From NCBI GenBank assembly GCA_964247055.1, contig OZ176054.1, positions 2,480,001-2,544,000 of the forward strand: 64,000 nt of DNA, given 5' to 3'. Source of the DNA: Paragordius varius. Taxonomy: Eukaryota > Animalia > Nematomorpha. Positions 30,901-58,600 of the stretch are shown piece after piece. Position numbers and translations under genes: made by a program. Within the stretch, counting starts at the first letter, position 1, and each line of letters opens with the position of its first letter. The notes below the pieces were generated by a model. It saw only the letters and a list, made by a program, of their open reading frames with translations, ran no database searches and had not been told where the DNA came from.

Positions 30901-33900
30901 TGCATTTATTTTTTTTCTATTATTTATTAATCTAATTTTCTTTATTTATGATATATTTATTCATTTAAAAATAAAAAATTTTATTGAAAAACCACTTTTT
31001 TGTTTCTTATTCATTCCGTGTTAAAATTTTACAAATCCAAAATTATTTTAAGAATTTAATAAAAATATACGGTTTCTCAAAGATTAAATGATATCTATTT
31101 AAAATTTATGTTAAATAATAGAAAATAGGTTAAAAAATAGATGTATTATTTACGATTTGATTGATAAAAGTTAAATACAAAATAAAAAATCAAACGACCA
31201 ACTTGAAGTGTTCACGGACCAACTTGAAATGTTCAAGAACCAACTTGAAATGTTCAAGGACCAACTTGAACTGTTCAAGGACCAACTTGAACTGTTCAAG
31301 GAAATTCTTGAAGTTCAAATGGTATATATTAAAAATCGTATTGGATCAATGTTTAAAAGATAATTTCTCACAAAAATTGAAAAAAGCTAAGTATAGTAAA
31401 AATTAATTATACGGAAAAAGAGACAAATATTTTTTTCAAAAGACAGCACCGCTTTTCTTAACATTTATTTTCCTATAAAAATTATTTAATAAAGATTGTA
31501 AAATATATAATTGATTGTGTTGCCAATATACATATCTATTCCGTACTTTGCAATTTCAAACAATGAGTTTTATTTAATACATGATTTACAAGGTTTGATT
31601 GTCTTTTATAAAAGAATATATCTCTTTATATTTTTACATTTTGTCCGAATAATTTCAACTTTTACTGTATACTCATTTTCCTATTTAAAAACTATAATAA
31701 TTTTGATTTCCCTTAAAAGGTAAAAAATTTGTATGTGGTAGCACTAAGATATAACTTTAAAATCAATATAAATTTAAACAGAAAAAACCCAGGCACCATT
31801 AAAAAACAACAAAAATTTTTAAAAATTGGTCAACTCATATTAGTGTAATCTTATATCTATTATACAAGTTATTAACCATCATCTATAAAAACCAGTCTAT
31901 AAAAATATAAATTTTTTTAGATCAGAAATTTATCAAAAAAACTTTTTTATTTATCTATAATTTAAACAAGCCAGAAATTTTTAAAAAAACGATAAAACAT
32001 AAAAAATATATCCAAATATTTGATCCAATTATTAAATTTTCATCTATTTATTATATACCATTTCCCAGTCTAAATAAACGTTTTCCCAGTCAATCGAAAC
32101 ATTTTCCCAATCAATCGAAACGTTTTCCCAGTCAATCGAAACGTTTTCCCAGTCAATCGAAACATTTTCCCAGTCAATCGAAACGTTTTCCCAGTCAATA
32201 GAAACATTTTCCCAGTCAATAATAACATTTTCCCAATCAATAAAAACGTTTTCCCAGTCAATAAAAACGGTTTTATTTTTGATGATAAATATCAAAACAA
32301 GAATATAAAAACACCTTTTAACCATTATTAGCGTAATATTAGGATATAATTTTTTATAAAAACACAATTATTGAATGACAATTTTTCCAAGTATATTCCT
32401 GTGCACAATCATTAATGATTTATTCTTTAAATATTATATTTTTGGAATTTGAGTTAAGATAATATTTTTTATTTTATCGACGTTTATATATGCGGCTAAC
32501 TTATAAAATCTATACTTACGGATTAAATAATAAAATTTATAAAAATATACCATTTTTATCACAAAGTCATTTAACACTTTATTGGATCTAAACATAAACT
32601 TTACGCCAAGTTTTTTTAATATTTATAATTTGATTCATAGGAGGCCCAACGCTGCCTTCTGATAATCTTTGTGCGGCCCGCGAAAAATTTGGAAAACCAT
32701 ATGCAAAAATATGCCCACAAAATCTTAGTAATAATCATATTTCTTACGTATTATTATGAATGGGTCTATTAAATTGGTAAAAAATTGTTATATTGTGTTT
32801 GTATTTTGCAGTCTTATAAAATTATGTGAATGCCCGTATATATTTCGAATAGAAAACCGTGTGCTTTTTGAGTTAAAGATGCGGCCCGCGAAAGCATTTA
32901 GTTGGACACCCTTGTTTTAGTAAAATATCCTTTTTATTAAATATTTTTAGCTCAAAAACATTTTTATCAAAAAAAATTTCGTTAAGATTTTTTTCCGACA
33001 GTATATTTATCGACAAACCGAAGATATTTAAAAACTATTCTGAAACGTTCCGCAAATATTAATGCGGACTATCGATAAAATAAAAAATATTATCTTAACT
33101 CAAATTCCAAAAATATAACATTTAAAGAATAAATCATTAATGATTGTGCACAGGAATATACTTGGAAAAATTGTCATTCAATTGTGTTTTTATAAAAAAT
33201 TATATCCTAATATTACGCTAATAATGGTTAAAAGGTGTTTTTATATTCTTGTTTTGATATTTATGATCAAAAATAAAACCGTTTTTATTGACTGGGAAAA
33301 CGTTTTTATTGATTGGGAAAATGTTTTTATTGACTGGGAAAATGTTTCTATTGACTGGGAAAACGTTTCGATTGACTGGGAAAATGTTTCGATTGACTGG
33401 GAAAACGTTTCGATTGACTGGGAAAACGTTTCGATTGATTGGGAAAATGTTTCGATTGACTGGGAAAACGTTTATTTAGACTGGGAAATGGTATAATTCG
33501 TGTTTTTGAAAATCACATCAAATTATTTTGGAACTAAATTGTAAAATCATTGATCAATATTTAAAACTATTAATTTATCTCCAAACTAAAAAAACTCGTT
33601 TCTAAAAATATTTTCATCAAGTTATAAAAAAAAATTTACCATTTAGACTAGGGGAAGTTTCAACGCCCGAAATATTGCCTTGAGCCATTTTGTTTGTGTC
33701 AACTTTGTACATATCTTGCAATCTAAAGAGTGCAACTGCAGCCCCATTCAAGTCCTGCTCGCCGGGCATAAATACATTGCTTGAAATTATATTGATGTAC
33801 GCTATATTATAAATTATTATGTGCACTTTGAAATAAAATTACATTGTGTTTGTTGAAAAGAGAGAAATTTAATGTTGGATAAAGGATATTCAATTACAAG

Positions 33901-41800: not shown

Positions 41801-44223
41801 TTATAAAGAATATAGGTTATAAAGAAAAAATTATATATTAAATTTTATGGTTTTTTATCAATTTTTTTTATTATTGTAAATTCAAAATTTTAATTTAGTG
41901 AGTAACGATTATAGTTTCGTAGGGTGAACGATGTGAACATCGCCGTAAGATAAGCTTAAAATAAAATATGAGCTAATTTATTGATACTCAAATTTTCGTC
42001 AAAGGCATCGTTAGGAGATTGATTCAATTATAAAATGGAGAAATAGATGCTTAAATATTTATTTATTGTATTGTTTTATATATAGCTATAAAAATGTTTT
42101 AAATCGCGTCATAAATCATATCTTTTTCAAAACAACGGTGTAATCATCAAATAACAAGGATATATCGAAAAAATAAAAAAAATTTTATGGTTATATTTTA
42201 TTTTCAAAAATTTTGACTAAAATGTGTCTTTAATGGTATATCTTATATAAAACACAATAATGTAATCATTAATGATACCTAAATAAACTAAAGCTTTAAC
42301 TTGGTTATTTTATTATCAAAAATTTTGTCTATAAAATAATTTTTTTTTATAATATTTCAATTTCTTTATGTATAGCTGAACAATGTTTTGAATTGGGTCG
42401 ACAATCCTATCTCAATGATGATTTTTATCATACGCGGATTTGGATGGAGGAAGCATTACGTAAATACGAATCTGAGGAGGAAAAAAGTGTTAAGCTCGAA
42501 GATATTTTGGAATATTTAGCTTTTGCGCTTTATAAGGTGACCGTATTTTTTTTTTCAAATTAAATTATTAAAAGTTAGAATTATCAAATGTTTAATATAT
42601 TATTACTTGTTTACTTTATCATTTTGTTACTTATTTATACAATGATTAAAATAATGGAAATCCCTCCAAATTAGGTAAATTCCGCAGTAATCAAACTTAT
42701 ATAAAACGTGATTTTTCGATTACTACTTTTAGTCTTTGTCAAACGTAAGTTAAATATATATCAAAATTAATACTCGATATGCGGGAAACTATATAATTGA
42801 CATAAAAAATTAAGATTGATATAGCATTTATAGATTAAGCCTGTTGATAAGTATAAATTTTTTATAGACTAAATTTTTAATTTTTTCAAATTTTTGTTTA
42901 TATGTTATATATTAGCAAGGGAATGTGTATGGTGCATTGAAGAAAACGGAAGAATTACTGGCTTTAAGTATGCTTTTTCGATTTTAATTTGCTTCTTAAA
43001 GAGAGAGATTAAAATACCCTAGTTTATTGATTAAAATTATAGTTTTTTATTATTTAAGTATAAACTAATTTTAATGATGATATAATTTTCGATATTTTAT
43101 TATATAAAAGATTAGAACATCAATCATAAAACTACGCAAAGTTATTTAAAAATTTTTTATAATTATTAGATCCTTTCCATAACCGAGCCCAAGGGAATAA
43201 AGAATGGTATCAAAAAGATTTGGATGAACTTGAAAAAGCCGGTAAAAAGGGCGATGAATGGGAACCGACTAATGCTAAATTAGAGGATGAATATGCCAAC
43301 CCTGAAATCATGAATTATCACAGTTTGTGTCGAGGTGATTTTCCAATAGTAAGTGTTGTTTGTCAAAAATATTTTATTTGAAGAAGAGTTTTTTTTTAAA
43401 TGATTTTTTGTGATTGTTTTATTTTTGGGATCATAATTATTAGGGTATAGGTTATCAAAGTTAAATTTATAATTTGCCAATCCACAAATTATATTGTGTC
43501 TACGTCATTTCCTAATGGCATGTTGTGTTTAATAATATTTTTATTTATTTTCATTTTTTTGGATTGTTAACCTTTTGTATTTTTTTATATTTTATTCAAC
43601 CTTTTAAGCATTTTTTGAAGTGTATTTTAATGTATCTATCTTAAATATTTTAATCAATATTTAAAAAGTTAGTTTAAGTATATTAGGATAACAATTTGTC
43701 TTAATTTTGAGGCAAGGTCCAAACTTTCAAATAGCCTTATTTTTTTACAATTGACTGTAAATAAAATTATCATCAATATTTAATCTTTTTATACCTTAAA
43801 TTTGGTTGAGCAAAAATAAAACTCTAGGAACTAGAGTTTTATAAAATATTACTTCATTGTAACAATAGTCAATGCTGAATCAGTCAATTTTGTTTCGAAT
43901 AAAACCCTTTTTTAAAACCAAATATAACATATTTTCTACGTTTTTATTTGTCAACCGTCATAACTTGTAGATTGAAATTTTATATATGTGAAAAAATTCA
44001 AATCATTACTTTCAATGGTTTTTTTTATTATGTGCATAGGATCCCCTTATAGCCCGTAGACTAAAATGCAAATACGTTAATAAACACAAATCACCCCTGT
44101 TAATTTTGGCCCCAGCAATGGAGGAACAGGTCGGAATGGATCCTAACGTCTATCTTTATCACCATGTCATTAATGATCGTGAAATGAGTGTTGTTAAACA
44201 ACTTGCTTCACCAAAGGTTTTTT

Positions 44224-44265
<42 letters not shown>

Positions 44266-47200
44266 AAGTAGAATAAAAGTTTGAAATTATTATTTAGTAG
44301 TAGTAGGCATTTTTAGTTTTGAATAACTGCTTTTAAGAATAATTTTTAAAATTTTCATTAAGCTCAACAAACTCAAACGTTGTATATGTAGCAAAGGACT
44401 AAATTTTTTGCCGATATTTTTAGGTATTTTATATAAAAATAAATTATTTAGCTTAAACGAGCCACGGCTTTCAATGCAAAAACGCAAAGGTATGAACCCG
44501 CCGATTACCGAATTAGTAAAAGGTAATTAATTATTTGTTTTTTCTTATTTTGTGAATCATTTTACATTTAATTTTTAATTTCATATATGTTTTTTTAGCG
44601 CTTGGCTCAAAGAGGAAGATCACACAGTCATAAAAGATATTAATAAACGCATATCAGCTATAACGGGACTTTCTATGGAAACAGCCGAAGATTTACAGGT
44701 ATTAAAGGATTTTGTAAATAATTTACCAAAATTTATTTAATTTTTGCGCATATTTAGGTTTTATAATCCTATTTTTTGAAAATATATATTTATTAATTTT
44801 AAGAAAAGTTAGATATATTTTATAAGAAAATATTATTTAATTTGAAATAATTTTAAATGAAAAAATTATATTATTTAGGTGGCAAATTATGGCATTGGTG
44901 GTCATTATGATCCGCACTATGATTTTTCACGGGTAAGTGTGTGTGTTTTATTAAAAGTTTAATGTTTATATTTTAACGATATAATTAATATTTTTGGACA
45001 AGTGATTGCATGCGTAAAGATAGTTAGTTTTGAATTTTTTATTAATCATATTTTATACATATATATATAATTAAATATAAAAATCTAAAATTAAAGTGTT
45101 GGAATTTTCTAAATCAAGGGTGTTTAACACAAATAAATGGCTTCACTAGTTGCATTTCAAACTCAAGAAATCTGGCGGGCCGCAACCAGAAAAATATAAA
45201 TATTTTAGATAGATTTCAAACAGACTGTAAAAAAATGTATACAGTTAGTTACCAATAGAAAAGATTTATATTCATGAAAATTTGCCAATTTTATTGCGAT
45301 TTTGTCATTCACCATTTTATCCCCAAATTTGATTATTCATATATGGTAATTTTTTTTGATGTCTCAGAGGGCCAAATGTTGGACACCCTTGTTTTAAATT
45401 GAAAACATAAATATCATATATCTTAAAAAGTTTTTTGCATGACAATAATATTTATGTAGAATTTGTCTTAATATCCCAAGTTCGTAAATAAAAATTTTTT
45501 TACTCTTTAATCTTTAAGGTAAAACACCGTTTTTGCCTGACTTTGCTTATATTTTGCATACAACCTTATTTCTCTGCATGCTTTATATAATTTATTATAT
45601 GTCTATCTTAAAATTTTCTGTATTTTTTATATAAAATAATAAAATATTTGGACAAATTTTATCTTTATATAATTTTATGATTAAATATTTTATATTCTAC
45701 ACATTAATGTTTTTTGGTTTTCATTCCTCTCACTAACAATTTCTATTACTTTAAAAAGACAAAAAATAATTGTAACGTTTATATTCCACCTTTTTTCGCA
45801 ATAATTTCTATATCAAAGAAAATGAAATTTAACATAAAACTAGCACGCATATGCATGTACAATTTTTTTAACAAATTATAATTTTAAAATTCATATAAAT
45901 CTGGAAATTCCCAATTACATGTCATGCAGAGCATAGAAAAGGATGCTTTCAACGAACGCCAAGGAAACCGTATAGCTACTTTTATGTTTTACGTAAGTTT
46001 ATTTCAGCTTATTATACCCTTTTTTATTGTGGGAACAGTAAAATTACATAATTTAGGGTGGTGCTTTTTGTGGGCTAGCTTACGCTTTAATAAAATTGTC
46101 AAATTATCAGTGACTTTATTGCGAAAACGGTGTTTTATCTTTTTTTATCGCTCTAGTGATTTTTAATTATACGAACGAAGGGGTGTTAAGTATTACTCAA
46201 AAAATATAAAATTAATTTTCGCTTTTTTCTGCTTTTTTTGGGCGGATGAATGTTTAGGAACCCGAATATGATAATGATGGAAAATTACTTGATCAACGTA
46301 TCGCTACATGGATGTTTTATGTATGTTTTGTTTTTGTATAGCTGTGGTATTTTAAAATTTTAAGGGGGTGGTGAAGTTTTATAAAACGAAAATTGAATTT
46401 GACCGTAGGGCAAAATAATTGGTGAAAACAATAATGATTTTTTATTCACACAATGAATACCATTTTGTATCTACTAGTTTTTTTTCCCTCGTATTGAAGT
46501 ACAAGGTGATTGGTTTTTATTCTAAAACCACGATTGCTGTTAAACTAATAAAATCAATATTTGCATAAAAATTCCAAAATTAAGAAGCTTTTGTTTATAT
46601 TTTATAATTCGCCCATGTTTAATGGGGCTATATATTAAGTTTTACGATTTAAAAGGTTTGTTAGATTATCCATAAATTTAATTATACAAACAAAATTTCA
46701 AAAGATTATCAGTTACTGGTTTTTGAAATTTTAAATGTTAATAAACCATTTACTTGAGTAATTTCTTTTTAACCCAACCCATATCTTACATCAAAATTAT
46801 ACCATAATATCTATTTATAATTAAATTTTAAATCATTTTAACTCTTTTATTTATTAGATGAGTGATGTTTTGGCCGGTGGTGCGACAGTTTTTCCTTTGG
46901 CTGGTATTCGTTCAACTCCTAGAAGAGTATTTATATCAATTTTTACTTTCGAAAATTTTAAACTATTAAAAAAATACAAAAATATACGGAAAAGTAAAAA
47001 AATGTCATTTAAGTATGCAGACAATAATTTAAACCCAAATGTTTCATAAAATCTTTATGACTATTACTATTATGTGATAACTAATTGAAAAATAACATTA
47101 CATCCCTCTTTTTTATTTCCATAATATAGGAGGTGGGTGCATTAATGATCAAAAATATTATATGGTTTTTACAAAATGATAATCTTTTACTTTTTGGTTT

Positions 47201-47871
47201 ATTTTTTATATAAAATAATTTTATGTTCACTACATATATTTTACAATTTTTTAGAATGTATGTAGCATTTTTTAAACCTTTGATTTACCTTTCTAGGGTT
47301 CTGCCGTATTTTGGTACAATTTAAAGGCTTCTGGTGCTGGTGATTTTAACACAAGACATGCGGCATGTCCCGTCCTTGCTGGTAGCAAATGGGGTAAATT
47401 CATAAAATTTTATCATTTTTTTTGAGTTATTTAGTATAAGTATACACTAAAAAATATAATCAAAGAACTATACAAGAAACTTTTTAATATACTAATTTTT
47501 ACATTGCAGTACGTGGAAAAGGCGCCATATTTTAATAAAAAGCCACACCACTTTAACTAATTCTTCCAACCATATTTTTAGATTATTAGACTATAAGAGT
47601 AAAAATATTATATACGAGAGTTGTAAAATATGAATTCGAAATTTGTATGATAAGCGTTTCGGCTATATAAAATAATTTAAAAATATAGTTAATTTATTAA
47701 ATCTGCGGTTTTAAATAAAAAAAAACCGTGACTTTTATCTTACATTTTTACGCCTTATATTTTCAAATTTTACATTAAAAAATATAAAAACACCCAATAG
47801 TTGCCAACAAATGGATCCATGAAAGGGGTCAAGAATTTTTGAGACCTTGTCGCAGAAATCCTGATTTGTAA
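38438..47871 (+). CDS. P4HA: Prolyl 4-hydroxylase alpha subunit, paralog A (530 aa, canonical collagen-P4H-type motifs)
   Basis: Exons 38438-38628, 39478-39623, 40979-41140, 42376-42536, 42916-42967, 43170-43348, 44040-44216, 44452-44522, 44599-44698, 44879-44932, [45930-45992 or 46258-46320], 46858-46926, 47297-47393, 47801-47871. Total 1593 nt, all GT-AG and in phase. Motifs YRISKSAWL, AEDLQVANYGIGGHYDPHYD, GNRIAT, GGATVF, RHAACPVLAGSKWVANKWIHE. Confidence 0.96.
40250..40640 (-). mobile_element. Degenerate non-LTR retrotransposon (LINE) 3' fragment in P4HA-A intron 2 (boundaries approximate)
   Basis: Minus-strand reading IREYRLH*ARV...KKGRPRKTWQST resembles the RLRWxGH...GRPRKxW C-terminal motif of LINE ORF2; contains stops. 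Confidence 0.5.
44227..44262. repeat. (TA)18 microsatellite 10 nt from the exon 7 donor
   Basis: Direct reading. Confidence 0.95.
45115..45391. mobile_element. hAT (Buster-type) MITE
   Basis: TIRs CAAGGGTGTTTAAC / GTTGGACACCCTTG; 8-bp TSD TTCTAAAT / TTTTAAAT (7 of 8, central TA). Confidence 0.75.
45520..45536 (+). promoter_or_regulatory. Intronic element I of predicted RNA duplex around exon 11a, P4HA-A
   Basis: UAAAACACCGUUUUUGC pairs over 17 nt (one U-G) with 46121-46137; conserved in paralog B. Confidence 0.7.
45930..45992 (+). CDS. P4HA: P4HA-A alternative exon 11a (SIEKDAFNERQGNRIATFMFY)
   Basis: CAG acceptor, GTAAGT donor, 63 nt, phase 0-0, homologous to exon 11b. Confidence 0.9.
46121..46137 (+). 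promoter_or_regulatory. Intronic element II of predicted RNA duplex, P4HA-A
   Basis: GCGAAAACGGUGUUUUA, complementary to 45520-45536. Confidence 0.7.
46258..46320 (+). CDS. P4HA: P4HA-A alternative exon 11b (EPEYDNDGKLLDQRIATWMFY)
   Basis: TAG acceptor, GTATGT donor, 63 nt, phase 0-0; its orthologous exon is intact in paralog B (24549-24487). Confidence 0.9.
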
Positions 47872-48403
47872 TGAAAAAGAATCAAAAATCCATCCAATTT
47901 GTGGTTCAATATTATAGGAAAGATTTGATCTAAAATTGGAAAATAACCCGAAAATCAAAAATTAATAACTCATACATTAAATGACACAATAACTAAATCA
48001 ATAGCAATAATATTATTTTTGACTATGTATTTTACTATATTATTTTTATATTCATAATCAAAAAATATGCACCCAACTTGTCAAATAACCCATATTTTTA
48101 AAAATCATACAAATTATTATCTTATTCTTATAATATATTTTTAACGCATAAAGGTATTTTAATTAGCTTAAATTTTTAATTTTATTGGGCATTTCATCCA
48201 AGTTATACGTATATTTTTAGATTTTTATTTAGAAATTATATTATTTTATTTATTATGTATTAATTTCAACAAGGCATTACAAAGATTATTATTAGTCCCC
48301 AGACTACGTTTTCCATTTAAGACCTTATCAATTTATAAATTATGCATTTCATTCATAAAAAATGTCAATAAATTTATTTTATTAGCTATAAAGAATATTT
48401 ATA

Positions 48404-48541
48404 TTACATTATAATAGATTTGAGTTTTCCAATCAATTTTTGAAGTTTGTTGTTCGGCTCAGATGTATTTTTATCCATTTGAATCACAAAACTAAATATA
48501 AAATAAGATACATATATTAAATAGAAAACTTTAATTATTTT

Positions 48542-48577
<36 letters not shown>

Positions 48578-51500
48578 CTACCTTTTGGTACAATAATTAA
48601 AGATTGATCCGAAAGCTAAAGCCAGCAAGGTGCAAGAAAAGCATAGCACATTGTATGGCATACTAAAATCAGGGACTGGAAGCATAACTAAAAGCGGGAA
48701 ATCAAAATTTTCTTTTGTTATGTTGTGCTCGTTGTCAATACTATGTGTAAAATAGATTATATATATATACAGTAAAAATTGGAATTATACGGACAAAACG
48801 TAAAAATATAAAGACAAAATGGTTTTTTTTTTCAAAAGACAGTCATACTTTTTCAAACTTGATTTTTTTGAATATAAACTCATTGTTTTTAATTCATTGG
48901 TAATTAGAGATGTAAATTAATAACACAATCAAATGTAATTTGCGATTGTAAATAAATAATTAAAATAGGGAAAAAATAAGGATTAAAAAAGTATAATTTG
49001 TCTTTTAGAGAACAATATTTGTCTTTATATTTTTACGTTTTGTCCGTACAATTTGAATTTTTACTGTAATTTTGAAAATTTATTAATGATTAATACATAT
49101 TTTGGATTGGAATAAAAATTATGGATAGTAGGACATAGGTAATCAAAATTATAGATTTGTTTATATTGATATCATAACATTGAAAATACATGGCATTATT
49201 GGATTTAAATTGTATTTTTGTGTTTGGGAAGATTAATATTTCATATTTAATCAATCATAGCAATGATTACAATTATCTGTGTCAAGCCCCCAAAATCAAT
49301 GATATCCAATTTTTACTTCATAGTATTTTGAAGCATGGTAAAAACGGTATGAAAAAGTTTAGGTTTTCTTAACGTATAAAAAAGACACTAAAATTTAATT
49401 GAACTAAGCAGCTAATTTTGTTTTAGATTTAAAACATTACCGTGTATTTTATTGACCATATTTTTCTTTTATTTGGAACCTTTTTTTCGATTTAAACAAA
49501 ACATTTAAAAATATTTGATGGCTAATTTGTGTTGAAGATTTTAACAAATTTACATCTTTTGTATGATGTGCCAAAAACGCCATAGAATGTAAAATATTAT
49601 CCGTGCTTTAATATCTCGAATAGTTATATAATTATCAGTATTATTACATTTTGAAAATTCAAAAGGAAATGGCAATTTTAACATCTATTGAATCTTTAAT
49701 GGAACAAATATGGAATATCTCCGAAAAATGATTTACATGAAACTCAACAATGGCAATCCCGTGTTGTTATCTTTATAATTATTAAAAATACATGGAAAAT
49801 ATTATCCTTGAAAACGGCACCAAACATAATTGTTCATTACCCTGCTTATGAAAAATTTTGTCTTATGATCTAAAATTTGCAATTTCTTAAAAATGAAACA
49901 TTACTTCCTCTGTTGGATATATGACAGTTCAGAATAAGACTAACTAAATATATACATCTCGATTCCTCTCGGTTTCAATAAAGCAACTATTATTAAAACA
50001 TTATTTCGGTTTAAATGATAATAAATTATCATCTATGTATGCGGTCAAATTAAAAAATTTATAAAATATTGAAGCATTACCGCCCTGTTTGAAATATGAT
50101 TATACAGTTTAACACATCCATTTCCTAACGGTTTAGGATGAAAAAAACAAGGTTACACATTTTTCGGTTTAAAATGATCCTCTTAATGTTTGTTTAAATT
50201 AGGGGTGTTTTTTGAATGCCCAATATAAGTAAAATTATTAAATAATCCATAAATAATTAATTGGAATGGCGATATATGGATATTAGTAGTGTAAATATAC
50301 TGTTAGTTTTTTTAGTTTTCTAAAATATTTGTATTATCTACAAGAGTCTCTAATTTAATCAAAAAATGCTGCTTTCATTTTGGTTTACATTGAGTTTCTA
50401 TGCGTTTACATGTGGTTAAATATCATTATTTTTTTAAATAAATCTCCAAAAGAATGTTATGGTCTCTTAGTTAAATTGTGATTTTTTCGTTACAGCATAA
50501 ATTTATTATCAACATCTTATATTTTAATGTCTTAATGTGCTAAAAACAACATTCTAGCATAAACAATAAGTCTAAATATATTAGATCAAATTATACGGTA
50601 AAAATTGAAATTATACAGACAAAACGTAAAAATATAGGCAAATTAAGGCAACCGTACTTTTTTAAACCTTATTTTTTTCTATATACATTATTCAATAACA
50701 ATTGCAAAATAAATGATTAATTGAGCTACCAATATACATCTTTATTTCATATTTTACAATTTTAGAGTTATATTTTAAAAAAATTAATTAAAGCACGTCA
50801 GTTTTTTGAATAAAAATAATGTGTGTATATTTTTTGTCCGTATATATACCATTAGTTCAAGCTCACCCTTGAACAATTCAAATTCACCCTCGAACAATTC
50901 AAATTCACCCTTGAACAATTCAAATTCACCTTCGAACAATTCAAACTCACCCTAAAAAATAAATTAGGTGTTTTCGAACTAGTCATTATTAATATGAAAT
51001 ATATGTTTATGGTATAGTATATTATTTTTTCAGTATTATTTTAATTTAAAACAAAACTTTCATTTTTAAAAAATATATAAAATATTTTATTATTATTATT
51101 ACATTACATGTTTTCACTCGTGAGAGCGGTCATGTTATACAACCTGTCTCGCCATAAAACTCTATCTATGGCGTCCTCTGCATTAAGCTCGTATTCTGCT
51201 AGCTCTCTTTTTACTGTATCTATCCATTTTGTTTTAGGTCGCCCACGTCCTCGTTTTCCCTCAATTATATAACCATCTATTATTTTTGCAATATAATTAG
51301 AATCTCTCCTTTCAATGTGCCCGAACCAACGTAGCCTATTTTTTGACATTCTTTCCACTATTGGTTTAATATCTGTGCTCCCACGAATAAATCTATTCTC
51401 GATTCTGTCCTTTCTAGTTACCCCACACATCATTCTGAGCATTTTCATTTCAGTCACGTTAAATTGTATTTCTTCGGATTTTTTGACACCCCATGTCTGT

Positions 51501-53871
51501 GAATTATACATCATTGAGGGCTGGACAACTGAACTGTAAATCTTACCTTTCACTCTAACATCAATATTTCGATCGCATAATACGCTCGAAATTTTCTTCC
51601 AATTTACCCAGCTGCTCTTTATTCTTAAATTAATATCGTCAGTTAACGAACCATCTGCACTTAACATAGCTCCCAGATATTTGCAACTTTCTTTACCCTT
51701 CAGAACCCAACTATCATCAACTACCATTTCATGTTGTGGACCCCCAAAAGTAATAAGTTCGGTTTTTGCTTTGTTTATTTTCAGACCATATTGATCCAGC
51801 ATAACAACCCATCTGTTTACCGTTCGCTTTAACTCAATTAATGAATCAGACAAGATGATTATGTCATCTGCATAAATTAAGTACCATCCTGAACTCACAT
51901 TAACAACCTTGGCTACCTCGTCCATACAAATTATAAACAATAAGGGGCTGAGTGATGAGCCTTGGTAGACTCCATAAAAAATATATAAAATATAGGTAAT
52001 TTTAAATCTTAAAAAACATATATTTTTATTTGTAGGAGGGTGAATTTGAATTGTTCAAGGGTGAATTTGAATTGTTCAAGTGAATTTGAATTGTTTAAGG
52101 GTGAAATTGAAGTGTAAATGGTTTAGTATATACTATTTCAAAATTTATTAAATCATCAAACCTTTTGGAAGTTTTGCTTGCTTTTGACGATTCAAATTTG
52201 TACCGTACAATCCCGCTAGGCAGTAAAAACCCATGTTTACTATCAGGTGGATATTCATTCCAAGGTAATAATTTATATTTTACGCGAAAACTTAAATGCA
52301 TTTTGGTAAAATTTGTTAAGAGTAATGCTTGTTTTTTTCTTGTGGTCCATAAATTAAAGATGAGAGTTGATGGATATTTGTTAGTTTTTGTATCTCTTTT
52401 TATCAGGGAAAATGTTCGCTTTCGATCAGGAAAGTGCCAATTAAATGATATTTCTAAATGATATTTTATGTGATATGCAAATTAAAAAAATGATTTTACA
52501 GTAAAAATTGATATTATATTCAACTTAAAAATCAAAAGACAAATATTTTTGAAAAAAAAGAACAATACTTTATTAAACCTTAATTTTTATGCAACTCATC
52601 GTTTTGGTTAACAAAGTAGGGAAAATAGAGATGTAAATTGGTAACGCGCTTAATTCTATATAATTAAATTGTAATAGTAGGAAAAAATCAAGGTTTTACA
52701 AAAGCATGGTGGTTTTTTTTTAAAAAAATATTTGTCCATTATTTTTTACATATTATCTATATAATATCATTTATTCATATTTGGATATAATAAATGATGA
52801 TATCTTTTAATCATTCTGAGATTTAGTTTCATAATCTTACAAATTATTAATATGATAGTTAATTTTTAGATGATGGCTTTTTTGAAAATTTCAAAAATTT
52901 ATAGAAGATAATCATAAAAATATTACCGTTTGATGGTATATGCACAAATGTTCTATTCACATAATAAATATGCAATCTTAGGGTATGTAAATATGGTGTC
53001 AAAAAATATGGCATAATTTGCGTGTATGTCAAACTTTGTAACTCTTTAACATTATTTTCTTGAGAGATTGCGGATAATTCCTTATGTGCAAAAATTTCAA
53101 CATTCAATGTATTTATATAGCTTCCATAACCTAAACAATAAAATATAAATATTATAGATAGTTACAAAAAACTCTAAAATTTTATAAACTACTTTGTCCG
53201 TCCGGAAAAGATAAAAAGTTTACCACTGAAAATAAGGTAAATAAAACTATTCTCGTTAACCACAGTTTGTTTTTTTAAAAACAATCTACTTTTTCGGTTT
53301 CAAAATGATTTTAAAAACGGTTTCAAAAACGATAAAAATAAATCCGGTTCAAATCCCAATAATTATTTTTAAACTTGTAACAAATATAATGATAAACAAA
53401 CCTGTCATATATTTCTGACTACTAAAATATGGCAATGAAAAGGTTGTTTGAGATTCATTCTGAGAAGCAGTTGAATTCAAAATAAATTTGTTCAAAAATG
53501 AAAAATTTGATAAAACGATAGGATCTGACAAATTTCGGGTCCCCAGTACATCATATAAATTCTAAATAAAATAAAAAAATTAAACAGAAAATTCTTTCAA
53601 AAAATATCAAAATTTTAGTTATTTTTTTAAAAAAATTTATACATGCGCATTTGGTTGTAATAGATGTAACATAGGGCTTTCTTTAACTAATGGACATGCA
53701 AGGGATTTTTCATTACCATTGTGATAATGGTCGGAATGGCCATAGTTTTTGTGCAAAAATTTAACTGCACATGCAAATTATAAATATATATTTATGTATA
53801 TATATATCACCCATATTTTGGAAAAACTTATATTTGCTAAAATGCAATGTTAAGCACTATAAAAAATAAAT

Positions 53872-53911
<40 letters not shown>

Positions 53912-55543
53912 AAAAGTCTTGATAAATTTGTTTGTAGCATTAAATGGATAAATCATAACATTAAAAAATGTAACTTTTCATTCTTTTTATATTTGAAGTA
54001 ATATGTATAAAATAAATAAATTAAAATCAATTTTAACATAAAATCTCAAATTTTACTTAAACTAAGCGATTGATCAGATCCGGAGATAAGGTTTAAACGA
54101 TCTAAAACATCAAATCGCGACACGTATTCAACATTGATGGAATTGGTATCTTTGTCCACTTGCGTTTTAACATGGATGCAAAATCCAAAATATGCTTTTA
54201 AGAACCATTTACTTTCCATTATTAGCGTTGCTAAACCCGACTATATTTATTTAAATATAAATCTAAGATATTTTAATTTGTAAAAATAATTATTGAAGAT
54301 GTATCGTAGACCAACTCACTATTACCAGATTGTGTGTACACACATTAAAAAGGTTATTAAAATTTTAATTAAATTTTTTTCAACATTAACTTACTAAAAC
54401 GAAAAATATAATAAATATTTATATTGTTTTTGGTTATGGGGCTCTTTAAAATTCCCACGAGCTCGTGAATTTGTGGAAAGTTATATTCAACTATCAATTA
54501 TAAGTTAAAAACTAAGTGCTTATATATAAAAAAGCATAATTATCAGCAGGAGAATTGATTTCAAATTCAAAGATATCAATTAGGAAGAAAATTAAACTAA
54601 AATTGTATATAGAATCCCTAGATTGTGCCACCAATTAAAAAATAAAGTATCACAAAAAAAGAACGGATGTTAGCACAATTTTATGGAAAAAAAACTAAAT
54701 TAAGGAAAGCAAAAATTACTTGAAGCCCGCATGGCATCATTTTTTTCCATTTACTCAAATTTTCAATGCAGACCGCTTCAACCGGAACTATTGTCATTTT
54801 TGTCACGATAGAATTATCTGTAATCGTGTCATTAATTGAATATATGGTTGACGATGTGGAGAGAGATGTGCAAAATACACCACCCAAAATGTTCAGTAAA
54901 AATTCCCATTTTTCATCGATATCCAGAGTTCCTTTTCTATAACATTTATAATAAAATTTAAGACAAATGTTAATGTACATTAGAACCAACCATATTTTCC
55001 ACCCTGTTATTTTAGAATTTACTCTAACTAATAATAATAGGAAATATGTGATTGAGTTTGTTATTAAATTACAACCCTAAACGATAAGTTAACTAAAAAA
55101 AACTAAGATTTGAAAACGTATGGCTGCAAAATTTATCTTTCAGTTAAGTTTTCTTTTAAATTTAATTTTTCGTGTGTATTAAAGTTTTAAAAACAATAAC
55201 CTAAAACTAGCCTTTAAATAAAGGCCAGATGGAAAATCTTCAGGAATATGAGGTCCATATATCACATGGTCCCATTGCTTTTGAGTCATAGACAAAGTAA
55301 AATCACTGATATTATGGAATAAAATTAATTCATACAAATAGGCCGGTATATATTTTCTATAATGGGAACCTAGTCTAAATTCCAAAATTTACCCAAAATA
55401 AGTGTTTCCTCTATTTTAAATTCATACAAGGCATGCAGATAGTTTTGATCTTTGTCAATAATGTTCATATACATGTTTTCAGAATATACACTATAAATTT
55501 CATATAAAAGGTTTGAGAAATATAAAATTTTTAGGATTAACAT
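48404..55543 (-). CDS. PIGT: GPI transamidase component PIG-T (Gpi16), 579 aa, 10 exons
   Basis: Exons (high-low) 55543-55393, 55369-55201, 54936-54720, 54240-54063, 53764-53643, 53561-53402, 53130-52927, 52453-52162, 48740-48582, 48491-48404. Total 1740 nt, in phase. Motifs [37 protein letters not shown] (includes the Cys that links to PIG-K), [54 protein letters not shown] and a C-terminal TM helix. Confidence 0.95.
48544..48575. repeat. (AT)16 microsatellite in PIGT intron 9
   Basis: Direct reading. Confidence 0.95.
48770..49066. mobile_element. TA-flanked MITE, CAGTAAAAATT family (pogo/Tc1-like)
   Basis: TA|CAGTAAAAATTGGAATTATACGGACAAAACGTAAAAATATAAAGACAAA ... TTTGTCTTTATATTTTTACGTTTTGTCCGTACAATTTGAATTTTTACTG|TA; about 50-bp TIRs. 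Another truncated copy starts near 50596. Confidence 0.8.
50849..52121. mobile_element. Foldback-type element family C (GGGTGAATTTGAATTGTTCAA 21-bp arrays) carrying an RTE insertion
   Basis: TA|CCATTAGTTCAAG with about five inverted units (50860-50955), and about four direct units at 52038-52121 ending GTGTAAATGG. Confidence 0.8.
51086..51975 (-). mobile_element. 5'-truncated RTE-clade non-LTR retrotransposon, uninterrupted RT C-terminal frame
   Basis: [13 protein letters not shown]...YADD...CKYLG...[11 protein letters not shown]...[12 protein letters not shown]; (TAA)n 3' tail; 18-bp TSD AAAAAATATATAAAATAT at 51068-51085 and 51976-51993. Confidence 0.93.
53875..53908. repeat. (AT)17 microsatellite in PIGT intron 4
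   Basis: Direct reading. Confidence 0.95.
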
Positions 55544-55619: not shown

Positions 55620-58600
55620 ATGGAACGGAGCGACGATATAATCATTCAATCCCCTGATTTTAAATTGCTAATCACCAAAAATTGTCAAAACTTACATATT
55701 AACTTAAAGGATGATTCCAAAAAATATTTTAAACAACTAATAAACCAATCAAAATCATTTAATTATCCCAATAAATCATTAACCTCCATATCTATGTATT
55801 CTAGCAAGGCTTGTCAGACGTTACCGCTAAATATGTCTAAAATTAGGCCTATTTGTTATGATTCTTTTAAAATTGGCTCTAAAGCCGATCATTCCAAACC
55901 CGAGTTAAGTAAATTAAAGCATAGCGAAAAATACCCTAGAAATAACGTTAATATTCCAATAAAAAATGACACAATGACAATCAATACAAAGGTAATGTAA
56001 CGCTTTTTTATTGATTTTCTGTGGCACATTTATTTTTCTAATCATAACGATCCTATAACATTCCTATATTCCGCAAATTATATATTTATATTAAAAAAAT
56101 TTTGTAAATACTTTTTTGTTTAACACAATTATTAAACTTTTAATCTAAATATCAGAATTAATAGGTAAAGGCCCAAATAATTTTTTGATTAGTTAAAAAT
56201 GTTATTAAATAATTTAAAAACAATTTTAACAGTGAATTTAGTTTTAGGTTGTGAAGACTTATCGGTGGTATATTTTTATTATATAATTGTACGAATCTGT
56301 GGGTAAACGACGAATGTTTGATAATGCAAATGATATGGAGATCGCCGTAAAATAAAATAAAACTAATTTATTCATTCCCAAATTTGCACCATAGGCATCA
56401 TTAGAAGATTCGATTAATAAATGGAAATATACACATGAATAAACTTTTTATTTTTTTTTGTTTTTAACATTGTCCATTTCTTAATTGAATCTCCAGGACA
56501 CGCCTTTGGTAAAAATTTAGAATCACTGAATTAGTTAAATTTTGTCTCGGCTATCATAATATTAAATGGTTAACTAATTTTCCATCACTCACATCATTTA
56601 TTCGTATATAAAAACTGACTTTAATGAGCGGGAATAAATTATTTCTACTTGTCGTAAGACCGGTCATTAATATTGACGGTCGAAAAACCAATCCTACGCA
56701 AGAACTAACCTGTATTCGATATCCATTAAGGTTATAAAAACCTGAGAGTATTTAAAAGTTTTTATTAGTATAGACCAGTGATACTCAAACCGCGGCCCGC
56801 GGGCCGCATGCGGCCCGCAGTGTGCTTTAAAAATGCACTATGACTGATATTTATTTTTTTTTAAATAATATTTATTTTTTACCCAATTTGAAATGTAGAA
56901 AAATTTTCTACATTAAAATGATTTTAAAATTTATGATTTATGGGCACACGTTGTTTCTTCTTCTTTTCTTTTTGAAATTTTTATTGCATTTCTTTTTTGT
57001 TTTCACCCATTGCACATACATTTCATTGCTATCCTGCATCATTTTTAAAACTCATTCTCATAAAATATTTTCAACTCAATATCATTAAATTTCGACCTGT
57101 TTTTTATAGCATAATTCATATATATTCCTATCTTTTTTACATAATATTTAAACATAAATTCAAAGGATGACATCTAATGCCAAAAAACGTAAATTATCCG
57201 ATGAAAATCGCTCCTTTAAAAAAGAATGGGAAACTAATTTTTTTGTCGTTTTAAATAACAATGTTGCTACCTGTCTTATATGCAAAGACAATATAATTAT
57301 AAAAAAATTCAATATTGAAAGACATTTTAAATTCCATCATTCTTATAAATTACCAGAAAATCTTGAGGAAAGAAATGAAAAATATAAAAATTTTAAGGAA
57401 TTATACGAGAAAGAAAAATCTATTATGGCCATAGCTTTTTCCCAGGAAAAAGCTGTAACATTAGCTTCGTATGAAATATGCTATATTTTAGGAAAAAATA
57501 TGAAACCGTTTACTGATTCCCAACTAATAAAAGAATGTTTAATAAATGGTTGCACTTTTTTATTTGATAAATTCCATAATAAAGATCAAATCATGAAGCA
57601 AATTAAAAAACTTCAACTTTCTGATTCAACATGTGCTCGACGCATTGAAGATATGTCTAAATATATTTTTAACAATACATATTGGCTCTGAAAAATTGCA
57701 AATACCTCAGTATTGCAATCGATTCCAGCACTGATAAAGTTCAACACCTCAATGTGCGCTCTTCGTGAAATTTTGCAACGACAACTAAATCAACGAGGAA
57801 TATTTGAAATTTTTACCAATGAATAATACCACAAAAGGCAGTGATTTTCTTGAAGTAATTAGCACCTTTTTCGATAATAATGGTATATCTGTGAAAAAAT
57901 TGGTTTCGATCTGCACAGATGGCTGTCCCTCTATGATTGGAATAAACAAAGGGTATACAGAAATCGCTTAACTAATGATCATATGGACGACGTATTAAGA
58001 ATGGCCTGCCATGAGACGAAACCAAATTTGTCAAAAATTATTGGTTAATATTAAAATAAATGTTATTATCAATATATTTTAATTTTTAAAACTAAATGGT
58101 ACAAAACGAATTTTTAGCTGGATTTACATGCGACCCGCAAAAAATTTATTGTGCTGATTTAGAGTATAAATATGTGCGTTGTCAAATACCTATGGAATAT
58201 TTGCCATTATAAGGTTCATGGCCCTCGAAAAAAAATATGTTTTATTTGGCCCGTCAAATTTTTTTGGTGAGTACCACTGGTATAGACTATAAACTCTATT
58301 TTTCTAACGATAACGCTTCTAGGATTTGACTCGTTTAATTCAACGCATCGTGCACAGAGAATTGCAACACAGAGAAGGGGAAAAACACTCTCAAGTCAAT
58401 AAACCCTCGATTTCTGACGTGGAAAACGATGAGGTTCAAAGTTCCCAGGATTCAGTTGCCAGTACACTTGTAACATCTCTTCAGGACATTTCTTTAACTC
58501 AAAAATCAGAATCTCATAATAATCATCAGCAGAAACGTAGACACGAAAGGCCAAAATCTAAAAATCATAAAAGTTTATGTTACGAATTATTGCCAAAAGC

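Follow-up and report, generated by a model that had tools for sequence, protein, structure and literature searches.

A candidate 23-nt first intron in the PIGT gene of the horsehair worm Paragordius varius

Introns shorter than approximately 30 nt, the usual minimum in animals, have long been regarded as annotation errors in animal genomes. In a survey of 51 animal genomes from 2026, in which Nematomorpha are unmentioned, introns of less than 30 bp were confined to two groups, the myxobolid Myxozoa and Dicyema (PMC13644364). The myxobolids, namely, Henneguya, Thelohanellus, and Myxobolus, have median intron lengths of 22 to 27 bp (PMC13644364), and a mean intron length of 38 bp was determined for Dicyema japonicum, a species whose reduced genome of 67.5 Mb contains almost exclusively short introns (PMC6736024). 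The tiny introns of ciliates measure about 25 nt in Paramecium and 15-16 nt in Stentor. No published account of a short-intron class in Nematomorpha was found, and neither the genome paper on Gordionus nor a comparative preprint on Nematomorpha contains information on introns.

The locus described here forms part of a 64-kb stretch of DNA, which is referred to as the window (C5:2480001-2544000). It belongs to the 110.6-Mb assembly of P. varius, consisting of 44 contigs, and is very AT-rich, with a GC content of about 25%; none of the DNA resembled human sequence. Parallels emerge with the myxobolids, which, like Paragordius, are parasitic animals with AT-rich genomes. Their GT-AG introns of less than 30 nt are located in conserved genes, like the candidate introns of Paragordius, and at conserved positions, as may also be the case for the latter. 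However, the myxobolids are cnidarians, whereas Paragordius is an ecdysozoan. In the former, most introns belong to the short class and little more than GTa is left of the 5' signal, whereas in the latter, it forms a minority with a longer donor, GTWWRT, that is common to the four introns read so far (one in PIGT, two in LAMTOR2, and one in SRRM2). All four are first or second introns, and the genome that contains them is rich in transposons and also has introns that range from 60 nt to 3.4 kb. Dicyema is also a parasitic animal, in which a canonical spliceosome removes introns of 20-30 nt, as it presumably does in Paragordius, but nearly all Dicyema introns are short, whereas Paragordius has two classes, of which the long one extends to several kilobases. 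Ciliate introns are of similar length, and their retention also leads to a premature stop, but ciliates are unicellular, show a single length peak, employ other genetic codes, and are not linked to Paragordius by descent. A third, unrelated animal lineage with introns of less than 30 nt would be a novelty, distinguished from the other two by the presence of kilobase introns in the same gene.

The PIGT locus and its frame break

PIGT is an essential housekeeping gene that is needed for the attachment of GPI anchors. The gene was identified with the Pfam family Gpi16 (PF04113; curated cut-off, 27 bits) and with a full-length PIGT profile that was built from 11 full-length orthologues (Table 1). 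An earlier, sequence-only reading of the window had assigned the gene to PIGT, and this assignment was borne out by Gpi16 matches above the cut-off, by the existence of a single locus genome-wide, and by exons that are colinear with animal orthologues. Open blocks follow each other in order on one strand and cover positions 61-240, 360-393, and 424-530 of the full-length profile, whereas the poorly conserved positions 241-359 are without a detected match at the locus. Divergence is very high in the first 110 residues of the protein; when searched alone, they had no Pfam or PDB match, and there was no usable match in either database for exon 1 or exon 2 alone. Compared exon by exon, the predicted protein shows nothing unusual.

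The two junctions that were fixed, namely, those of introns 1 and 2, are both GT-AG. The other introns seen in the gene measure between 88 and approximately 3,400 nt, and the 23-nt segment is by far the shortest. The intron of about 3.4 kb reported in the sequence-only reading is real and spans positions of about 52150 to 48741. The RVT_1 reverse-transcriptase fragment inside this intron (window 51107-52054, minus strand) is oriented like the gene.

Table 1. Coordinates of PIGT features in the window and of the other very short introns read at the sequence level
Feature	Position	Strand	Characteristics
PIGT exon 1	55393..55543	-	ATG, hydrophobic N-terminus, YEF strand; last G is first base of split Gly codon
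Candidate 23-nt micro-intron (PIGT first intron)	55370..55392	-	GT-AG, phase 1
PIGT exon 2	55201..55369	-	GT completes Gly, SHYRKY...KASF, ends with AG of split Arg codon; full-length profile positions 61-115 (55367-55200)
PIGT intron 2	54937..55200	-	264 nt, GT...AG, phase 2; junction of exons 2 and 3 exactly between profile positions 115 and 116
PIGT exon 3	54720..54936	-	Pfam Gpi16 positions 113-186, 36.4 bits; full-length profile positions 116-196 (54935-54720); 49% identity to Gordionus PIGT residues 104-175
PIGT exon 4, core (edges approximate)	54112..54237	-	Full-length profile positions 198-240 (54237-54112); tblastn with Gordionus PIGT
PIGT middle exon, core (edges approximate)	52961..53062	-	Full-length profile positions 360-393 (53062-52961); Pfam Gpi16 positions 392-421
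PIGT YPPD.HGF-motif exon, core (edges approximate)	52173..52325	-	Full-length profile positions 424-475 (52325-52173); Gpi16 positions 462-502
Long PIGT intron, ~3.4 kb (donor approximate)	48741..52150	-	Same-strand RVT_1 fragment inside
PIGT penultimate exon	48580..48740	-	PDFSMPYNV transmembrane region; Gpi16 positions 510-548, 61.9 bits; full-length profile positions 479-530 (48736-48581); 70% identity to Gordionus
Last PIGT exon, inferred	48405..48491	-	Read from sequence; after 88-nt intron 48579-48492
LAMTOR2 intron 1	L023:1802-1826		25 nt; exon 1 corresponds to residues 1-22 and exon 2 to residues 24-63 of solved LAMTOR2
LAMTOR2 intron 2	L023:1975-1996		22 nt, in-frame stop; upstream-side support only, weaker
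SRRM2 intron 1	L008:5148-5173		26 nt; flanking exons correspond to residues 1-36 and 39-81 of human SRRM2; conserved Lys from split codon

Both frames that flank the break encode the N-terminal part of this single-copy gene. The upstream frame begins with the ATG at 55543-55541 and, in the absence of splicing, runs into a TAG at 55372-55370, whereas the downstream frame opens past a TAA at 55391-55389. The offset between the two is 2 nt, so that the removal of 23 nt joins them by means of a split Gly codon (G 55393 plus GT 55369-55368). The sequence-only reading had quoted these 23 nt at 55392-55370 of the minus strand and had stated that the unspliced frame stops, and both statements proved accurate, with the segment starting with GTAAAT and ending with CTAG. 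In a survey of GT-AG removals, the 23-nt removal was the sole choice that gives an open frame while maintaining both conserved blocks. As claimed previously, the nearer AG fails, since the corresponding 18-nt intron, ending at 55375, joins G to AC and is followed immediately by TAG; with the next AG further on, the intron would measure 36 nt and the frame would stop about 10 codons later. The claim that no upstream GT spares the YEF strand was equally correct: the only other upstream GT, at 55427, is located inside the Leu-Tyr codons, and a 53-nt removal from there (55427-55375) keeps the frame but deletes this strand. The 23-nt candidate has A at intron positions 12-13 and 17, none of them in a yUnAy context, and contains no clear branch-point motif.

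Homology of the flanking exons and competing readings

The exons flanking the candidate intron were compared, exon by exon, with an N-terminal profile derived from 17 PIGT N-termini. Exon 2 aligned with positions 64-116 at 25 bits, starting exactly from the S of SHY, and BLASTP matched it to residues 56-101 of Gordionus PIGT with an E value of 6e-4. When the exon 2 frame was used for a word search in 5.8 billion proteins, there was no match, which indicates that this protein collection holds no independent assembly or transcript of the locus. Exon 1 aligned with positions 27-55 at 2.3 bits, a score that was also reached in 19 of 2000 shuffles and in 5 of 749 control ORFs (p of about 0.01), and its last 6 residues remained unaligned; the BLASTP comparison of exon 1 with Gordionus PIGT was not significant. 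The open frame of exon 1 comprises 68 codons in DNA with frequent stops (about 9% stop codons).

No alignment with the N-terminal profile was obtained for the 7 codons that precede the acceptor. The spliced product has a residue count corresponding to the profile consensus minus 1, and read-through corresponds to the consensus plus about 7. The loop that connects the F-x-F strand to the HY motif has 9-22 residues in 18 orthologues and 19 in Gordionus, and would have 10 residues in the spliced and 18 in the read-through form. Since this range covers both forms, length alone does not discriminate between them, and the match to human PIGT proposed in the sequence-only reading is of little weight because the loop lengths of the orthologues suit both. 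The predicted contiguity of the flanking blocks after removal is supportive rather than decisive.

A search with exon 3 in 1.84 billion representatives returned one close match, PIGT of Gordionus sp. m RMFG-2023, the closest relative found, whose PIGT locus is represented by XP_065313838. The RefSeq and ENA versions of this protein, which are independent annotations, are identical from PNMIHYGLF on and wholly different before, and this divergence indicates, at the level of protein models, a Gordionus exon boundary that precedes the HY motif by 4 residues. The Paragordius boundary is located 1 residue before HY (LILG/SHY), and the Gordionus boundary is thus within 3 residues of that site. In addition, Gordionus PIGT is present in both annotation sets as a pair of forms with a length difference of 6 residues, with CMKYKSD in one in place of Y in the other (P0001/P0086 versus P0088/P0089). 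This 18-nt splice alternative could correspond to a retained very short intron or to tandem acceptors.

Taken together, the 23 nt at 55392-55370 of the minus strand are likely, with a probability of roughly 0.85, to be a genuine U2-type GT-AG first intron of PIGT; their removal from the RNA is what we infer from the observed sequence, frames, exon homology, and size class. An error in the assembly appears improbable. In this case, one base more, or two fewer, in 55388-55373 would render exons 1 and 2 continuous and leave no intron. Both frames are open across this 16-nt stretch, which is composed of short A, T, and G homopolymer runs, and the resulting 18-residue loop would be within the orthologue range and close to that of Gordionus. 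In addition, a chance test in which simulated 1-nt indels were introduced into real exons of the genome revealed that, in 39-67% of trials, the frame can be restored by at least one GT..AG of 19-31 nt, so that a bare GT-AG is weak evidence. However, rescue involving the donor hexamer of the verified short introns, as present in PIGT, occurred for roughly 5% of the simulated indels (range, 0.5-18%), an argument that is based on three other introns. Furthermore, the 7 additional codons generated by such an error align neither with any orthologue nor with the profile, the Gordionus models indicate an exon boundary within 3 residues of this place, and 23 nt is a typical length for the short-intron class of this genome. 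The coding sequence inspected for pure frameshift junctions amounted to about 40 kb, including 100 domain matches in a giant muscle gene (about 20 kb) and the family tables described below, and contained none, which suggests that coding indel errors are rare in the assembly. Given this rarity, the frequency of short introns, the donor motif, and the Gordionus boundary, the odds clearly favor an intron.

A different splicing pattern is very unlikely. It would involve either the 53-nt removal mentioned above or the use of the acceptor at 55370 by an upstream exon that has escaped notice, in which case the ORF 55543-55394 would not be the true exon 1 or would be cut differently. Although the 53-nt removal keeps the frame and the homology support for exon 1 is weak, this removal eliminates the strand that aligned with the F-x-F block of the profile. 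At such a stop codon frequency, chance would hardly produce a 68-codon ATG frame with a hydrophobic start at a distance of 23 nt from exon 2, and no other PIGT-like N-terminal match was found genome-wide. We consider still less probable a real frameshift mutation, by which PIGT would be a decaying pseudogene or truncated. Horsehair worms reportedly lack many otherwise universal animal genes, but this is the sole PIGT copy in the genome, its six profile blocks are colinear and open, its two fixed junctions are GT-AG, and the break is found exactly where a GT-AG segment of class length restores the frame. The proposal that a 23-nt GT-AG intron best accounts for the frame break is supported by the separate exon alignments, the Gordionus boundary, and the matching donor.

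Very short introns elsewhere in the genome

A survey at the sequence level covered 264 kb, corresponding to the window and 200 kb beyond, and identified three further introns of 22-26 nt, namely, introns 1 and 2 of LAMTOR2 and intron 1 of SRRM2 (Table 1). LAMTOR2 intron 1 and SRRM2 intron 1 are pinned by exons that are contiguous, to within one residue, with solved human or mouse proteins. In the case of LAMTOR2 intron 1, the split codon supplies Leu 23, and the continuity is exact. The LAMTOR2 gene (L023:1734-2119; C5:2735734-2736119) begins with two consecutive very short introns, and the gene encoding the SRRM2/cwf21-type splicing factor is located at L008:5042-5303 (C5:2589042-2589303), with a first intron of 26 nt.

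Information on additional families was obtained from genome-wide six-frame exon-match tables, in which gap size was defined as the gap plus the profile overlap. Ras-family genes showed 11 gaps of about 19-31 nt between adjacent exons versus 6 of about 46-80 nt. In E2 enzymes, exon gaps of about 25, 25, 26, and 27 nt were present, and one proteasome gene had a gap of about 24 nt that is in frame and contains two stops, so that the three tables contain 16 gaps of about 19-31 nt in total. Two Ras-family genes, at C2:7964739-7965373 and C5:5361143-5361730, apparently possess only introns of about 19-29 nt, three in each gene, as judged from exon coordinates. Short introns are present in perhaps a quarter of genes.

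Other genes differ in this respect. A giant twitchin/titin-like gene at about C5:2602000-2640000 on the minus strand (L010-L013), which encodes FN3 and Ig (I-set) repeats as well as a kinase domain, has 37 introns that split FN3/Ig domains. These introns measure 61-1476 nt, mostly 70-110 nt, and their donors are mostly GTA. None of these 37 in-domain junctions corresponds to a short intron, and no short intron was found in CCT genes. Two candidates in the twitchin-like gene, one of 31 nt and one of 25 nt in the kinase domain, were found to be coding sequence and were rejected. The two paralogues of collagen prolyl-hydroxylase (P4HA) in the window contain no clear short intron. Intron lengths thus appear to fall into two classes, with few or none between about 31 and 46 nt. 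The existence of two size classes, as proposed in the sequence-only reading, is supported by the 4 introns of 22-26 nt and the 16 short gaps versus the lengths of 61-1476 nt in the muscle gene and of 88 to about 3,400 nt in PIGT.

In reference-free scans of the 264 kb, long open frames were joined by GT..AG removals no more often than by removals based on control dinucleotides, since neighboring long ORFs are abundant in this DNA and genuine cases are scarce. Filters for composition and codon usage did not separate PIGT-like exons from the background.

Proposed splicing, significance, and neighboring features

In the proposed mechanism, U1 would pair with TGG/GTAAAT, and an A within the 23 nt would serve as the branch point. 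G 55393 would then be joined to GT 55369-55368 to form the Gly codon, giving the peptide ...TLILG-SHY..., whereas retention of the 23 nt in the mRNA would stop translation seven codons on. The intron would belong to a size class of about 19-31 nt, often represented by intron 1 or 2, that coexists with introns of about 60 nt to several kilobases in the same genome and even in the same gene. A more speculative proposal, which we regard as doubtful, is that the short introns, rather than being the lower end of the ordinary length distribution, form a distinct class at gene starts with its own donor, GTWWRT, often carrying T at +3, a position mostly occupied by A in longer introns. They might then undergo a variant form of intron definition that operates without a polypyrimidine tract and with a donor-to-branch distance far below the vertebrate limit. 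If so, Paragordius would be a model for the minimal metazoan spliceosomal substrate in an otherwise normal, long-intron genome.

If the intron reading is correct, short intron length would not depend on general genome compaction, and Paragordius would offer a natural test of the minimal RNA that a metazoan spliceosome can process. The default minimum intron lengths of gene finders and RNA-seq aligners would then produce broken or mis-framed genes such as this PIGT. Nematomorpha have been claimed to lack many universal genes, and mis-framed genes with short introns would inflate such apparent gene loss.

Several other features were observed in the window. The two P4HA paralogues form an inverted pair at 42300-47900 (plus strand) and 30261-21273 (minus strand); they share the same exon order, and matching exons have about 40-85% protein identity. 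Tandem arrays of a 21-nt unit, which ends in ...TTTTCCCAG, are found at 32068-32215 (plus strand) and 33334-33406 (minus strand). These arrays are inverted with respect to each other, are about 1 kb apart, and have a frame that is open for 85 codons. Finally, a 174-amino-acid ORF at 57167-57691 (plus strand) has a weak match to a Spin-doc/BED-like zinc finger and is probably what remains of a DNA transposon, either domesticated or in decay.
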